NCBI GenBank assembly: GCA_001179505.1
Contig: CDMY01000193.1
Span: 1 to 64,000 of the forward strand
Source: Vitrella brassicaformis CCMP3155
Lineage: Eukaryota; Protista; Chromerida
Direction: 5' to 3'
Length of the DNA stretch: 64,000 bases
Of this stretch, positions 523 through 21,488 are shown one piece after another (positions within the stretch are counted from its first letter, which is position 1; every line of letters starts with the position of its first letter). Below the pieces are notes generated by a model. The model saw nothing but the letters and a program-made list of their open reading frames with translations, was not told where the DNA came from and searched no databases. A program made the translations under genes and the position numbers.

Positions 523-593
523 ACACCGTTAGTATAGCGGTAGAATAAGCGGTTCCCATCCGCTTGGCCCGGGTTCAACTCCCGGACGGTGTA
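523..593 (+). tRNA. tRNA-Gly-CCC: tRNA-Gly (anticodon CCC)
   Basis: Hand-folded 71-nt cloverleaf: acceptor ACACCGT/ACGGTGT, D arm GTAT-AGCGGTA-GAAT, anticodon stem AGCGG/CCGCT with loop TT-CCC-AT (anticodon 555-557), T arm CCGGG-TTCAACT-CCCGG, discriminator A; T5 tract 28 nt downstream. Confidence 0.93.
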
Positions 594-884: not shown

Positions 885-955
885 TACACCGTCCGGGAGT
901 CGAACCCGGGCCAAATGAATGGAAATCATTTATTCTACCGCTATACTAACGGTGT
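885..955 (-). tRNA. tRNA-Gly-TCC: tRNA-Gly (anticodon TCC)
   Basis: Reverse complement reads ACACCGT TA GTAT AGCGGTA GAAT A AATGA TT-TCC-AT TCATT TGGC CCGGG TTCGACT CCCGG ACGGTGT A, a full 71-nt cloverleaf with B box GGTTCGACTCC. Confidence 0.93.
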
Positions 956-13056: not shown

Positions 13057-13771
13057 ACCAATCAGGTCGGTCGATCAGCCAGCCTGCCCCGATCGTATCG
13101 TGTGTTGATAGATATGTAGATATCCACTCATTTAATGGCAGGCACCCTGTGCGTCTTTTGTTTGTCGCCTCCATCCACTGAATGGGATGGAGGGATGGCA
13201 ACGTGTGTGTCTGCCTGGCTAGCTGGTGAATGAATTAGGTGTATGGTATGGCATGTGCCGGCATTTTTCTTTCCTTGATTCATGCATCGAGCTAACGATG
13301 AGCGTCGGTCGATGTGCATGAGACAGACAGACAGACAGACAATTCGGGGGTGCATATGGTGCAGGGGTCTGTCTGCGTGGCTTTTTTCTGCACGGATGCC
13401 CGAATGTGACCGTGCACGTTGATGAGTGATGTGACTGTGTATGTGAGACAGGCATAATGTTGGTTGCCGCCATATTTGTATGTCCGACGTGACGAGCACG
13501 CTGTTCATAACACACACATGCCGTCTCATGGTCCGCTGAGGGCTGTTGACAATCAAAGTCCATAGATCTTCAACGTCATCTTCAGCCTACACCCGAGGCC
13601 CCATATTGCCCCAAGGATCACGCGATGGATCGAATGGCCAGAAGCTTCGGCTGCCATCTTCGGGAGTCCCTATCAGCCACCCTTAGGATGGATCCCCCCC
13701 TCCTTGGGCCACTTTCTGGGACCTGAATTTACGAAAAAATCGAAGCTCGCTTACCTTCTATCGTCGCATAG

Positions 13772-16700
13772 ATGTGGTTGTTATATTTATTTGGCTGTTT
13801 GTTGGGTCTGTGTGCGGCCCAGGATCTGTTCATCGACGAGAATAACAAAGAGGAGAGCCCATCGCCGACAAACAAAGGTGAGCACCGCCCCCGACAGCCC
13901 GTTCTGTGGGTGGAGGGATGCACCACACACATGGGGACACACCGATGGATCTGTTGTGTGTGTCGGATGTGTGTCATTCCGCAGATGTGTCCGGTTACTG
14001 CTTTGTCTTCCGTCGGCTGCCCTGTCCAGCTTCCCAGCGGCCCGTGTGTGCGGCCGACGGCCTGCGCGCATTCACTGTGGCCAACCGGTGTCAGTTCGAG
14101 AAAATGCGCTGCGATAACACAAAGCTCAGACTCATCGGGGAGGATACATGCGAGAAGAGTAAGAAACGCCGGCCTTGGGATGGATCTATCTCTATGCTCA
14201 CGTCACGTGGTGGGGATTGTGTGTTGTCTGTCCATCGATCCATCCATCCATCCACTCAGTGGCGGCTGTTGAGGTGTCGGCGAGTTATGGGACCGGGGAC
14301 TTATGTGACCAGGCGTGCCTGACGGAGTATGCGCCCGTGTGCGGCAGTGACGGCACCACCTACAGCAACGAGTGCTTCCTGGAGATCGCCAGGTGTCGAC
14401 AGCCCTCACTCACGATTCTGCACCAAGGGGAGTGCCAGCCAGGTGAACTGGAATCATCTCCATCTACTCTCCATCCCGTTTCATTGGCTGATGTGTGTTT
14501 CTGTGGTTGTGGTTGTGGTTGTGTGTGTGCAGAGGACAGCGAGGAGGAGGACACGTCTGCAGTCGAGGCTCCCCCCGCTGGCCCCGACGCCATCAAGTAC
14601 CGACAAGCCAGCATCGACGGTGAGTGACTAACACCGCCTCGCGCGAGAAACTGACAGAAGTACGTTTATGTGTGGGTGTCTGTCTGTTTGTGTGGCGTAT
14701 GTCATGTGATGCAGAGGAGGAGCAGACGACGCCCCCGCCCGAGGAGTCAGGCGATGACGAGGAGACCGTCGCACCGGGCGAGGAAGCGGAAGACATGCAA
14801 GACGAAATTGGTATGTGTGCATATATACAACACCAAACACCCGTGCCTGAAGCGCCAAGGGCATCGTTTCCTCTCTCTTGTATGTCTCAGAGGAGGTCGC
14901 GGGTCCGCCGGATGAGGAAGCAGCCGACGAGGCACCAGGTCCGCTTGAAGATCACTCTGCACGGAGCCGGCAGTTGTCACAATTTTTGTGTGGTGTTGTT
15001 CACAGCTGCCCCCGAGCCCAAAGGGTGCAAGGAGTGCGACATGACATACCAGCCTGGTACGTAAGGAGGGGAAGGCTGGCAGCACAACACAAGTTCATTG
15101 TGGTCCCTCCCTCCCTCCCCTGTTCATTTGTATGTGTGTGTTCAGTGTGCGGCAGCGACGGTGTGTCGTACGTCAACAAGTGTCTGTTCGAGAGGGCCGT
15201 GTGCGAACTGGCCTCACCCGACGTCATCATGACCTACACTGAGGGACCTTGCCCCAGGGGTGCCGGTATATGCATCAGCCAAGCCACACACTCTTGTCAT
15301 GTCTCCTCCCTCCCTCCCCGATGTATTTATCCATCAGGCGGCTTGAAGCGGCCTCTGTTTCCTGACGCTTCTGACGAGGTGGCGGTCGACTGCGAGAAGC
15401 TCCAGGATGTGGTGTGCCCCAGGGTCCTGGAGCCCGTGTGCGGCTCTGACGGCGTGACGTACCCCAACAGCTGCATTGCCAAGATGGCGAAGTGTAGCAA
15501 ACCCGAGCTGGAATGGCAACCAGGAGAGTGTGACGATGGTGGGTTTGGGGCGGCAAATGGAGGGAGGGAGGACAAGGGCCACATGGCGTGTTCCTCATGA
15601 CTCGTGTGTTGTCTGTTGTCTGTTTGTCAGGTGTCCGTGAGTTGCAGGGGGACTGCAAGACGCCATGCTACGCCCAGAAGATCCCCGTCTGCGGCAGGCA
15701 AGCCAGCCACACCCACTACAGACATGGAAGCCAACCACTCTCTGTGCACGTCACTCTCTCCCTGCCTGTCTGTCTGTCACTGCAGTGACGGCGTGACGTA
15801 TGACAACATTTGTCACTTCGCCAACGCGTACTGCGACAACGACAGCCTCACCTACACCAAGGGCAAGTGCGCCAGCCGTGTCCTCCGGATCCTGCAGGCG
15901 CCCTTTCGGCGCTTCCAGGACTGGTGGGAGGGCAACAGATGGGGCGGGGGCACCGCCACCACTCGAACCAACCGACCCAACGCCACTGCCGACTTCTGCA
16001 ACCCCGACCTGAGCCCAGAGCTCATTTCGGAGATGTGCCCACCGGCCTTCCTAGCGCAGCCCGTGTGCGGGTCCAATGGCGTGACGTACGACGATTGGTG
16101 CCGGTTCAAGGTGGCCCAGTGCAAGGAGCCGGCCATGAGGCTGGCTGCGATGGAGGCCTGCGACGGTAAGTAAGATGTTGATGGATGGCAATGGCAATGG
16201 CAGCAGAGCAATGAAGGAGAGTTCATGAGATCCATTCACTTGTTTATTTGTTTATTTGTTTGTTTGTTTGTTTTGTCGTGCAGACAACGGGGATGATGTG
16301 ATTGCTGGCGCGCCCCCTCCCAGCAATGTCGGGCCTCGACGCTTGCAAAAAGGTAATTAAGCCAGCCGTGAGAACCGAACCGAACCGACACACACGCATG
16401 CAATGCACACCACACCGTGCGGGTCTCTTCTGGTCGTGCCTGCCCTTCCCTGCCTATCATCTCATCTCATCAGAGGATGGTAAGGTCGAGCGCATCAAGC
16501 TCCGCCGCCCGCGTGAGGGCGCCGGCAAGCCCTGGCTGGACTGGCGCGTCAACCGCACCGAGATCATGGACAGGATCTGTGAGCGTGCCGGGGAGGTGCT
16601 GACCAAGCGGTGCCCGGCTTTCCTGCTGGAGCGAGGGCCGGTGTGCGGCGACAACGGTGAGGTGTACGAGTCGTGGTGCCACTTCAGGGCGGCGCAGTGC

Positions 16701-19571
16701 AACGACACGGAACTCAGAGGGGTCAAAGTCACGCCGTGTGACCAACAGGAAGACGGTGAGCAAGGCAAGCGACACAGACAGAGAAGGGGAGCAGAGCAGA
16801 GACGTGTGTGTTATGTTATGGCGTGTGTGAGATGGATGCTGCAGAGGAGAAGGCAGAGGGAGGTGAGGGTGAGGGTCGTCAGCTGCAGAGTGGGCTTGGG
16901 CGGCTCGGTGAGCTGGATTGCGGGTGCCGCATCGAGGCCTACGGCCGCCAGCCGGTGTGCGGCAGCAACGGCATCACCTACCGCAACATGTGTGCCTTCA
17001 CCAGGGCCAAGTGCAGGAACAGCAAAATACGCGTCACCGCCCGCAACCGATGCGGATTCACATCTGTCCAGTTCCTCTCACACAACGTCTCGGAGCCAAT
17101 CCCACCTCCGCAAACCGAGGTCGCCCCTGAGGAGGCACCAGACGCCGCCCTGCCTCGCCAACTCCAAAGTGGCGACGTCAGTCGAGAGCAGCTGCAGCAA
17201 AGTAGGCACACACAGAGAAACTGCGCCTTGTGTGGCTGGCTGGCATTGGTGTGCGTGCGTGTTGTGTGCAGGTCTGGGTTTTTCCCAGCGTGTGACGGGC
17301 GACGTGTGCAAGTGTGACGTGGCGGCGTACGGCAAGGACCCCATCTGTGGTGGCAACCAGATCACCTACGTCAACGAGTGCGCCTTCCAGCGGGCCAGAT
17401 GCCTGATGCCCAAGCTCCGCAAACTCACCAGGGGCCCCTGCGGCACAACCGTCAAATTCTTCGGTACGTGCGGTGGCTGGGCAGGGCAGGGCAGGCACAC
17501 AGAAGAAACAAGTTTCCGTGAGGCGGGCATTCGTTCATTTAGGAGGCTTCCGCGGTCTGTCTGAGGCCAACGCCACGGTTGCCATAGATTTCGACAAGGA
17601 CTGCATGCGGCCATGCGCATTCGAAATCGACCCCGTCTGCGGCAGCGACGGGGTCAGCGACACGACCACACACACATTCACTTCAGACACCAGACAGACA
17701 GACAAAAGCTCACACTGCAGTCAGTGACCACCCACCTCTCCTTGATTATATATATTCATGTGGTTGGTGTGGTGTGTTAATACAGCTGACGTACCCTAAC
17801 GAGGAGTGCTTCCAGAACTGGGGTTTGTGCCGCGACAAGTCGCTCACCTTCACCGACGGCTCATGCGAGGGGAGTGAGGGTGGGGACCGGCGAATGCTTC
17901 AGAAGAAGGGTAAGGACGAGACGGGCCAGGAGAAGACCGCTGCCGACTTCAACTTCGCTGGCGACGACTTCACCTTCCTCGTAGACGGTGCGCACTCTCA
18001 TCATGACACACAGACACGTGTGTGGTTATTTATCGGACGGCTCGATGGCTGGATGTGATGGTTCACTCAGACCGGGATCTCGGTGAGGGTCAGGCAGCGG
18101 CGTGCAGCATGATCTGCCCCACTAAGGAGCAGCCAGTCTGCGGCAAACACAGAGTCAGTAACGTAAATAACGGAGGAAGGACGGGGGGAAGCCAGAGACC
18201 ACACCACACCACACCACAGCACATGACAGTCCGTCCAGCTCACCATTTCATTCATTCTGGTGTGTACGTGTGTAGAACGGTCTGCTGGTGACCTTCCGCA
18301 ATGTGTGTTACTTTGAGTTCCGCCGGTGCATGTCCAACGACGCATGGGCGGTGCAGAGCTTCGGCAAGTGCCCCGACACCAAGACAGCGGCGCCAGACGA
18401 ATCCAATGACGTCATCATCCCTCCGGGGCTCGGTGCGTCGGCTCAGCCGGCATCCACACCACACACAGACCAGACACACACAGAACAGAGGGACTGCGGT
18501 CTTCTTGTGGATGTTTGTTTGTGTGTTGTGTGTGTTGTGTGGGCTGTGTGTGCAGGTACTGAGGAGGATGTCAACTACGGACAGGCCATCAAGTGTCACT
18601 TTGCGTGCCCCACAGAAATCCTCCCTCTCTGCGGAAACGATGGAGTGAGTCCCTCCCTCCCTCCATCGTGTGTCTGTCTGTATGTCAACCGGTTTGTTTG
18701 TCCCCTCGTCTGATGTGCAGAATACGTACGAGAATCTCTGCATGTTTGAGGCGGCCCGCTGCAACGACACCACAGGCAACCTCAAGCTCTTCAGCATCGG
18801 CCCATGCACCGAGGCACGACTCGCCCAAATCTCCGGGGGCGCCGGACAACAACTCGCACAAGGAAATATAGAAGCCACGGACGATGGTACCCCCTCCCCC
18901 AACACACCTCACACATATGTCTCTTCGCCTGTCTGTTCTAATGCCTGCAGGCAACTCCACTCGTGCGTTGCAAGAAGCGTCCTGCATGTGCAACGTGGCA
19001 TCATTCGGCAAGAATCCCATCTGCGCCAGCAACGGCATCACCTACCTCAACGAGTGCCACTTCGAGCGCGCCCGGTGCCGCTACGCAAAGATACGAAAGG
19101 TCGCCCACGGCCCCTGCTCCCTCAACCAGCTCAGATTCTTCGGCGTCAACCGAACACAGCAACAACAGCAGCAGCAGCAGCAGGCCGCCATGGTGCAGGG
19201 GGGCAAGACAGAGATGCAGCAGCAGCCCAGAGGACTCAAACAGGACGGTCGGTGGGCGGCCGCACACACCCACACACATGGATGGATGGATGGATGTGTG
19301 TGTGTGTGTGTGTGTCAGGTGGTAGAGGGCTGCAGGGTGCTGAGATTGATTGCAACGAGCCTCCCGAGGATTGCCTCGCCATATGGGACCCAGTCTGCGG
19401 CACCGACGGGGTGAGACCGACCGGCCTCTGGCTGTGTGTGTGTGTGTGTGATTTGTGTGATTGTGTGTGCAGAAGACGTATGACAACGCGTGCCGCCTGC
19501 GGCTGTACAAGTGCATGGTCAGCCCCGAGCTGGCCAAGGCCCACGACGGCGAGTGCACCTCCGGCGTGTAG
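13772..19571 (+). CDS. Secreted multi-Kazal serine-protease-inhibitor-like protein (~14 Kazal domains)
   Basis: Signal peptide MWLLYLFGCLLGLCAA; repeated C-x7-PVCGSDG-TY-N-C-x6-C-C units such as CLTEYAPVCGSDGTTYSNEC, CPRVLEPVCGSDGVTYPNSC and CLAIWDPVCGTDG-KTYDNAC; stop TAG at 19569-19571. Confidence 0.9.
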
Positions 19572-21488
19572 TAGTGGGATCGATCCCCCCGATTAGTGTG
19601 GTTAATCTAATTATCATATTTATAACGAACGAACACAACACACCCACGCCGCACCGCGCCGCACAGAGGGGAGGATGCATTGATTGCATGGCGTCAGTGT
19701 GGTGTCCGTGTCCTTTTTGTAGTATATTTCTGAACAAAGCGAGGCGGGCAATTGAATTGTAGCAGTGCGGTGCATGACTGTGTGCACGTGTGGGTGTGTC
19801 CAGGTGTGGGGCGTCTGCAGAGAGCGACAGGGATGTTTTTCAACGCCAGCAACGGGCCACCGACCGATCTGATCACCACACGCCCCCCACCCACAACGAA
19901 CGAACAGAAACCCACCCCGCTACGTGAATGAGATGCCGCTGTTCGTTCGTCTCTCTGTGCGTGTGTGTGTCCATGCCATGTGTGTGTGCAGTCCTCTTCT
20001 TTTTCTCTTCGTGTCACATGTGCTTGTGTGTGTGTGCAGGGGGAATTTGTTGTGGGGGTCGCCATATCAATCAGACAACGGACGGACACAGACAGAGAGA
20101 CACAGACGCGCAAATGCCTGATGGATTTCCATCTGAATGCAATGCTCCACCGCCAGCCACCCTCGTGTGTAGCTCGAATGGCGTAGACTGCGCATTCACG
20201 CATGCAATCCAATCCGTCTCGGTCCGTCCACACCTCACGACACACACGAAACGAGCAAGCACACACACACAACACACCCCACAGAGACGTGTAAGGTAAG
20301 GGACATCCAGGCTTCCGTCCGTGCACGCCACGCAGGCACACAAGGATGGGAGGGGGGGAGGGAGGCATCCCATCCATCGGATAGATAGAGCGAGGAAGTA
20401 CGTAATGTGCGAAGGAAGTTAGGTAGGGGCCCTGAGTGAGTGGCTGGGGAGGGAGCAAATGCGTGTGTAAATGGGACAACGACGCGTACACAGACATACA
20501 TACACAGACAGACAGACAGTGATATAGAACGAACAAGCTTTGATGGTAGGCAGGTAGGCGGGATGGGGTGGGGTGGGTTGGGTGTGTGATCATGACATGA
20601 GCGGGCCTCTCCTCTCTCCTCCCTCCTTCTCAGCCAGCCAGCCAAATATACAGTGTGGCGCATGGATGTTATGTATGTGTGGCGGTGTGAGTGAGGGAGG
20701 GACCCCTCGGCTGCAGGTAGGTGATCCGATCCGTCTCGCTAGCCTGTTGATGGTCAGTCAACTCGCTGGCTGGCTCACCCACCGTCCAGACCAGACCAGA
20801 CCAGCCAGATCACCATCAACAACCGAGAGGCCACCGACAGACAGACAGCCCAGAGAGAGTAAAATCCAGACACAACAGAGAGAGAGAGAGAGAGAATCAA
20901 ATGCTCGTTTCCACTCCACGTATGCCGTATCTATCTGCGTGTGTGTGTGATGTGATGTGATGTGATGTGACACATACGATAGAGCTGTGCCGTGCCGTCT
21001 GGACAGCTAGCTGAGGTGGAGGTATCTATCGATCGTATCACCCCCTCACTCACTCAGTCACCCAACTCACCCCACCCACCGGTGAATGACTGACTCAGTT
21101 ACCACACAGCCAGTCATTTGCCAGAGAGTAGGAAGGTATCTATATCAGGCGGGCGCGGCGCGGCGCATGTGGCAAAAAGGTTTGATGGTTTGATGGCTCT
21201 CTCTCTCTGTGCACCCAAGCCAACCCACCGTACGGCCAGGCCAGCTATGTCGCTAGGCAGGATGGGATGGATAGGCAGAATAGAGAGAGTGAGTAGAGTG
21301 GGTGGGTGTCGCACCAGATGGGACATATAGATAGCGCCGCCAACACACACACATAGACACACACGTACTCTTGAAACACCTCATTCTTCGTTCCTTACAC
21401 AGACAGACAGACAGACAGAAACCCCGCCCAGCAGCAGCAGCAGCATGGAGACGGTAAGTAGATATCAATGCATCCCCCCTTCCGTCCC

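Follow-up and report, generated by a model that had tools for sequence, protein, structure and literature searches.

RxL motifs (Arg, any residue, Leu) guide proteolysis in several secretory systems, and here we describe a gene of Vitrella brassicaformis CCMP3155, an algal relative of malaria parasites, in which such motifs lie between the domains of a predicted secreted protein. The gene is on the forward strand at 13772..19572 of the window, that is, of the 64,000 nucleotides (nt) of contig CDMY01000193.1 (assembly GCA_001179505.1) that were analysed, and its product is a 1235-amino-acid (aa) protein with 14 Kazal domains (K1 to K14). The Plasmodium export element (PEXEL), in most cases RxLxE/Q/D, is confined to the vicinity of the N terminus, and plasmepsin V (PMV) cleaves it in the endoplasmic reticulum (ER) (PMC6212819). 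The Toxoplasma export element (TEXEL), RRLxx, is cut by ASP5 in the Golgi, can be far from the N terminus, and can occur more than once per protein (PMC6212819). In the diatom proteins Sil1p, silacidins, cingulins and frustulins, RXL ends each repeat, and an endopeptidase is thought to free the units (PMC4557024, PMC5525289). Among Kazal proteins, LEKTI (SPINK5) is a 15-Kazal polyprotein whose linkers are cut by furin, giving inhibitors of one or several domains that differ in their targets (PMC3949577). The secreted inhibitor TgPI-1 of Toxoplasma has four Kazal domains and is described as acting undivided (PMC12147184).

Comparison with described RxL and Kazal systems

The Vitrella protein shares with the PEXEL/PMV system of Plasmodium and the TEXEL/ASP5 system of Toxoplasma an R-x-L core in a related organism; in those systems the cut follows Leu in the lumen of the ER or Golgi. 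It may work like a PMV or ASP5 substrate, yet the strict definitions of PEXEL and TEXEL do not cover it. Unlike PEXEL, which is a single N-proximal site, the Vitrella sites number 13, are mostly RxLQ and are dispersed over 900 residues (aa 293-1177). The PEXEL pentamer is fitted by RGLSE, RDLGE, RALQE and RGLKQ and not by the nine other linker sites, and the first 30 aa after the signal peptide contain a single RxL (RRL, aa 45-47), which lies inside K1. Unlike TEXEL, RRL is found among the linker sites only at 16337 (RRLQK); elsewhere the residue between Arg and Leu (P2) is P, E, V, I, Q, Q, G, M, D, A, G or G. A preliminary description of the locus had proposed a cleaved, PEXEL/TEXEL-like polyprotein. 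The layout of a cleaved polyprotein has held up, in that the protein is predicted to be secreted, is expressed, and has RxL bounding whole domains. Membership of the PEXEL or TEXEL class has not, given four fits to RxLxE/Q/D among 13 sites, one RRL, and the dispersal of the sites.

The layout is closer to that of the diatom RXL-fenced precursors (PMC4557024) than to that of an export element. Both have a signal peptide, RXL at the unit boundaries and several units per chain. Diatom units are short, unfolded and biosilica-associated and belong to stramenopiles, whereas the Vitrella units, from an alveolate, would be folded, disulfide-rich Kazal domains with Gln after Leu, and their cleavage is predicted. 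The RXL domain of diatom Sin1 consists of 30 aa ending in RRL; the Vitrella RRL at 14011-14019 (aa 45-47), 28 residues past the signal peptide, likewise ends a 30-residue stretch, but it is inside K1, between the first and second cysteines (C1 and C2).

With respect to cargo, the closest system is LEKTI, also a large secreted multi-Kazal precursor. However, furin cuts LEKTI at basic sites, in place of which the Vitrella protein has RxL, and the two sequences have no more than the Kazal fold in common. TgPI-1 and its relatives are similar in being secreted multi-domain Kazal inhibitors with non-classical domains of short C1-C2 spacing, and they come from the same wider lineage. They differ in that the apicomplexan arrays retrieved here lack linker RxL enrichment. 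We found no relevant publication on RxL, PEXEL-like processing or plasmepsin V in chromerids. A tree in a paper on Babesia aspartyl proteases includes Vitrella sequences and does not state whether they belong to clade D.

RxL motifs in the inter-domain linkers

There are 17 RxL motifs in the protein, 13 in linkers and four within domains, and all eight RxLQ are in linkers. Of the 13 inter-domain linkers, 10 contain RxL, all of them among the 11 successive linkers that begin with K3-K4 and end with K13-K14. The first two linkers (K1-K2 and K2-K3, the latter 86 aa long and acidic) have no RxL, nor does K11-K12, the sole late linker without a site. The preliminary description had listed 11 of the motifs, and all 11 proved to be exonic and in frame, at the coordinates given there, in the spliced coding sequence (CDS), which RNA contigs and the database protein A0A7S1JSF3 support; none of them is intronic or out of frame.

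The motif is far more frequent than the composition of the linkers would predict. Across the 554 linker residues we compared observed counts with those of 20,000 shuffles. RxL occurs 13 times against 1.85 expected and RxLQ eight times against 0.15 expected, and in neither case did any of the 20,000 shuffles reach the observed count; RxLx[EQD] occurs four times against 0.5 expected (p=0.0015). That RxLQ exceeds chance had been proposed before, and the evidence is now stronger than was stated then. Related patterns are not enriched in the linkers, with no KxL (1.1 expected) and one Rx[IVM] (3.0 expected). Basic sites are at chance, both dibasic [KR][KR] (6 versus 5.4, p=0.46) and RxxR (4 versus 2.0, p=0.13). 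Thus, the linkers show no signal of the furin or kexin type, and we rejected basic processing sites as in LEKTI.

The way in which the motifs are encoded suggests that the constraint acts on the protein. Within RxLQ, Arg is encoded by five different codons, Leu by TTG, CTG, CTC or CTT, and Gln by CAG or CAA. Given this variety of synonymous codons, a cause at the level of DNA or splicing is unlikely. Several motifs begin 2-11 nt past a splice acceptor, and others are mid-exon or at exon ends. We considered an artefact of splice signals, in that CTGCAG resembles the acceptors of this gene, and ruled it out based on the varied codons and the mid-exon positions.

Apart from the motif, the linkers are as dissimilar as had been supposed. 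When the motifs are masked, local alignment of the linkers in pairs gives scores with a mean of 16.3 (shuffled, 16.1 ± 0.5) and a maximum of 27 (shuffled, 27.9 ± 3.4), and the Kazal domains themselves are only 23-60% identical in pairs. Given that the masked linkers resemble one another no more than shuffled sequences do, and that the domains have drifted, the motif appears to have been kept by selection; the same two results speak against a relic of duplication. Based on these sequence comparisons, RxL(Q) is the sole conserved feature of 10 of the 13 linkers and is apparently held by selection at the protein level.

Other Kazal arrays do not share this feature. For comparison, two database searches supplied 201 other proteins that contain four or more Kazal domains. 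Their linkers have a median of 0.27 RxL per 100 aa, versus about 2 here (about 8-fold), and none of the 201 has more than one RxLQ. The Kazal arrays of Selenidium, Cryptosporidium, Besnoitia and of oomycetes have linker RxL at chance. This comparison rules out RxL as a general property of Kazal arrays, and among the arrays compared the RxL punctuation is, judging from their sequences, specific to the Vitrella protein.

Three further sequence features were noted. A Kazal protein of the green alga Edaphochlamys debaryana (1042 aa) has seven RxL outside its regular-expression-defined domains versus 0.9 expected; three of the seven are an identical RCLAD, and probably belong to an unrecognised repeat rather than being linker sites. 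In the Vitrella protein, RVLE at 15421-15432 within K4 is the reactive-site loop (with Arg as the P1 residue of the inhibitor), a look-alike of the motif and not one to count among the candidate processing sites. The K13-K14 linker contains a (CAG/CAA)n tract at 19157-19183 that encodes nine consecutive Gln.

A putative RxL-cut pro-inhibitor and its alternatives

We suspect, with a probability of roughly one half, that the linker RxL motifs are processing sites cut after Leu, releasing single-domain inhibitors. In this scenario, the signal peptide would direct the 14-Kazal chain into the ER, and an RxL-specific endopeptidase of the secretory pathway would cut after the Leu of each linker RxL. 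An in-silico cut after every linker Leu gives the three-domain unit K1-K3 (278 aa), nine single-domain units, the two-domain unit K11-K12, and spacers of 3, 8 and 33 aa, and these are the products that we would expect to be released. The predicted single-domain units are K4-K10, K13 and K14, of 51-111 aa (58-111 aa if the overlapping RVL and RIL count as one site). None of the predicted cuts falls inside a domain, and eight of the products would begin with Gln. The N-terminal Gln could cyclise to pyroglutamate, which would shield the released inhibitors from aminopeptidases, and Gln may be preferred after the scissile bond (P1') because such a cap protects a secreted peptide. So marked a preference for Gln at P1' is a novel feature.

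The released domains could inhibit different enzymes. The C2-C3 spacing is classical in eight domains, whose predicted P1 residues, taken as C2+2, are T, M, R, A, F, T, T and A; the T, M, R, A and F read earlier from the domains agree with these. With differing P1 residues, the classical domains would target different serine proteases. As for the processing enzyme, a clade-D (plasmepsin V/ASP5-like) aspartyl protease is our candidate by analogy and takes about half of the weight, and the alternative candidate is an RXL endopeptidase of the type proposed for diatoms.

To examine the context of the motifs, we applied AlphaFold 2 (AF2) with a 36-row alignment to the 118-residue product of exon 14, which comprises K8 with an RQLQ on either side. 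The K8 core has a predicted local distance difference test (pLDDT) score of 89-95, and both flanks, including the RQLQ motifs, have a pLDDT of 50-64 and no secondary structure, low values that are partly due to the lack of alignment coverage in the flanks. The model weakly suggests that the linkers are flexible and the RQLQ sites accessible.

Besides this property of the alignment, several points weigh against a cleaved precursor. Many multi-Kazal proteins function uncut. An exhaustive protein search returned no orthologue outside Vitrella, and the next matches were generic Kazal arrays of animals, oomycetes and gregarines. The multi-Kazal arrays of apicomplexans that have ASP5 or PMV are without linker RxL enrichment. 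With RxLxE/Q/D fitting 4 of the 13 sites and RRL fitting one, the specificities of PMV and ASP5 (PMC6212819) are unmatched as they stand. What we infer is that the protein is cut at all, at which bond and by which protease, and that pyroglutamate caps the products.

It is possible, if somewhat unlikely, that the motif is functional and not cleaved, serving in binding, sorting, spacing, or cross-linking of a wall or matrix, with the chain remaining intact as in arrays of the agrin or ovoinhibitor type. The evidence presented above is for selection on the motif and leaves cutting to inference, most of the multi-Kazal proteins retrieved are uncut arrays without such motifs, and Gln at the fourth position (8 of 13 sites) is outside every known RxL protease code. 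However, lumenal and secreted proteins are not known to have an RxLQ motif for binding or sorting. Processed precursors typically show the arrangement seen here, with one site per linker, whole domains bounded, and paired sites fencing spacers of 33 and 8 aa, and RxL has been proven to direct cleavage in two related settings (PMC4557024, PMC6212819). Cutting of the linkers by a serine protease at another bond is distinctly unlikely. Such an enzyme would act after Arg (trypsin-like) or after Gln (S1B, V8-like), perhaps extracellularly and on demand, with the inhibitors' own targets doing the cutting. The Arg is indeed invariant within the motif, and G, A or S follows five of the eight RxLQ, which resembles the sites of LQ-cutting proteases of the chymotrypsin fold. 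However, Leu is as invariant as Arg, and Q is missing from five of the linker sites. Together with the absence of K.L and the rarity of R.[IVM], the invariant Leu points to a reader of R-x-L rather than to a plain P1-Arg or P1-Gln reader.

The remaining explanations fare worse. Chance, or a functionless relic of the tandem duplication of linker-plus-domain exon modules, would account for the 18 of 23 introns in phase 1 and for the motifs just past splice acceptors, as duplicated exon modules predict, and also for the RxLQ before each of K8, K9 and K13, which belong to one subfamily. Nevertheless, it is very improbable, in that the counts are out of reach of the shuffles, motifs with differing codons occupy mid-exon and exon-end positions as well, and a tetrapeptide free of selection would be expected to decay along with the linkers, which retain no residual similarity when masked, and the diverged domains. 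We give hardly any credence to a strict PEXEL or TEXEL that licenses export or trafficking rather than the release of units. The RxL core is common to both elements, a few sites fit one consensus or the other, and an RRL is located shortly after the signal peptide, though inside K1. However, most sites fail both consensus patterns, PEXEL is found only near the N terminus (PMC6212819) while the Vitrella sites extend along most of the chain, and Vitrella, being free-living, has no host cell as a destination for export.

From the perspective of parasite evolution, a cleaved Vitrella pro-inhibitor would be of interest beyond this gene. Plasmepsin V and ASP5 are drug targets, and their RxL code is mostly portrayed as an adaptation that serves protein export into host cells. 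If the protein is cut as we suspect, the code would gain a pre-parasitic role, the maturation of precursors, in a free-living relative, with a possible link to the unexplained RXL processing of diatoms, and the protein would be the first multi-Kazal polyprotein with a non-basic linker code. The link to the export-motif protease is a hypothesis worth testing. More speculatively, and in our view rather improbably, RxL followed by Gln could be a general code for secretory maturation in chromerids, read by a free-living ancestor of PMV and ASP5, through which one precursor yields many units, in this case single Kazal inhibitors with a pyroglutamate cap. In that event the parasites would have narrowed an older polyprotein-processing system to PEXEL and TEXEL at a later stage, and the older system might be shared with the diatom RXL system. 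The protein is a good test substrate, as it is expressed and a single chain offers 13 candidate sites; the units predicted to be released, being stable and rich in disulfides, should suit detection by mass spectrometry.

Gene structure, transcripts and domains

The gene has 24 exons and 23 introns, the latter all of 62-133 nt, with the ATG at 13772 and the stop codon at 19570-19572. RNA contigs from four public runs were placed on 13700-19690, and three of these runs provided spliced contigs. At least 15 of the 23 introns are visible as joints in spliced contigs (14 GT-AG and one GC-AG). The other eight were placed via the reading frame and the Kazal consensus, with contig arithmetic for two of them, and the basis for these introns, 14939-15005 included, is frame logic and agreement with A0A7S1JSF3. 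The GC-AG intron, at 15698-15785 inside K5, is seen in the spliced contigs of three runs. That 18 of the 23 introns are in phase 1 fits growth of the array through duplication of exon modules.

The spliced model, with the donor at 15266, matches A0A7S1JSF3, an independent open reading frame of 1235 aa derived from an MMETSP transcript and retrieved by the exhaustive protein search. The genome annotation of CCMP3155 (CEL93806.1 / A0A0G4EEJ0) has 1212 aa, and its sole difference from A0A7S1JSF3 is the lack of 23 residues. These are encoded by a 69-nt exon at 16284-16352 (phase 1 at both ends), which carries RRLQ and is contained in the spliced contigs of three runs. Either this is an annotation error or the exon is a cassette that adds or removes one candidate site.

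Kazal domains were recognised as six-cysteine domains with a PVCG-x-DG-x-TY-x-N-x-C core, and the signal peptide was called by eye from the translation (Table 1). In a scan with Pfam PF00050/PF07648, seven of the eight exon translations tested exceed the gathering cut-offs (E 1e-8 to 6e-13). K1, the weakest Kazal domain, is slightly under its cut-off (20.4 versus 22.8 bits). K8, K9 and K13 belong to the non-classical CxC subfamily, and RxLQ precedes each of them.

Table 1. Predicted signal peptide, Kazal domains and linker RxL motifs of the Vitrella protein, in window positions
Feature	Position	Strand	Basis and remarks
Signal peptide, predicted, aa 1-17	13772..13822	+	Hydrophobic core, then small residues
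Kazal K1	13999-14151	+	Six-Cys pattern
Kazal K2	14304-14435	+	Six-Cys pattern; Pfam Kazal_1/Kazal_2 for the K1-K4 stretch
Kazal K3, intron-split	15026-15252	+	Six-Cys pattern
RPL, linker K3-K4	15349..15357	+	In frame in spliced CDS; absent from the preliminary description
Kazal K4	15391-15531	+	Six-Cys pattern
RELQ, linker K4-K5, 6 residues ahead of K5 C1	15636..15647	+	RNA joint confirms exon start 15631
Kazal K5, split by GC-AG intron 15698-15785	15654..15870	+	RNA joint, six-Cys pattern
Overlapping RVL (15877) and RILQ (15886), linker K5-K6	15877..15897	+	Spliced CDS; RVL absent from the preliminary description
Kazal K6	15997..16161	+	Six-Cys pattern, Pfam
RRLQ(K), linker K6-K7, in 69-nt exon	16337-16348	+	RNA contigs and A0A7S1JSF3
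Kazal K7	16578..16739	+	Six-Cys pattern, Pfam
RQLQ, linker K7-K8	16877..16888	+	Spliced CDS; AF2 pLDDT 50-57
Kazal K8, non-classical CxC type	16919..17053	+	Six-Cys pattern, Pfam; AF2 core pLDDT 89-95
RQLQ, linker K8-K9	17156..17167	+	Spliced CDS, AF2
Kazal K9	17307..17441	+	Six-Cys pattern, Pfam
RGLSE, linker K9-K10, fits RxLxE	17551..17565	+	Spliced CDS
Kazal K10, split by intron 17653-17785	17602..17866	+	RNA joint, six-Cys pattern
RMLQ, linker K10-K11	17891..17902	+	Spliced CDS
RDLGE, linker K10-K11, fits RxLxE	18073..18087	+	Spliced CDS; bounds the 33-aa spacer with RMLQ
Kazal K11	18103-18371	+	Six-Cys pattern
Kazal K12	18594-18807	+	Six-Cys pattern
RALQ(E), linker K12-K13	18962..18973	+	Spliced CDS
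Kazal K13	18983..19117	+	Six-Cys pattern, Pfam
RGLKQ, linker K13-K14, fits RxLxQ	19229..19243	+	Exon extent via contig arithmetic
RGLQ, linker K13-K14, 9 residues ahead of K14 C1	19324..19335	+	Spliced CDS
Kazal K14, split by intron 19411-19472	19351..19556	+	Six-Cys pattern, contig arithmetic

No aspartyl protease gene and no further Kazal genes were found in the window. In the introns within 13878-19472, the first half is rich in C+A and the second in G+T, as in those at 18433-18555 (0.69 versus 0.13) and 19248-19318 (0.60 versus 0.14). Elsewhere in the window there are two tail-to-tail tRNA genes, at 523-593 (+) and 885-955 (-), which match Rfam RF00005 with 54.8 and 59 bits.

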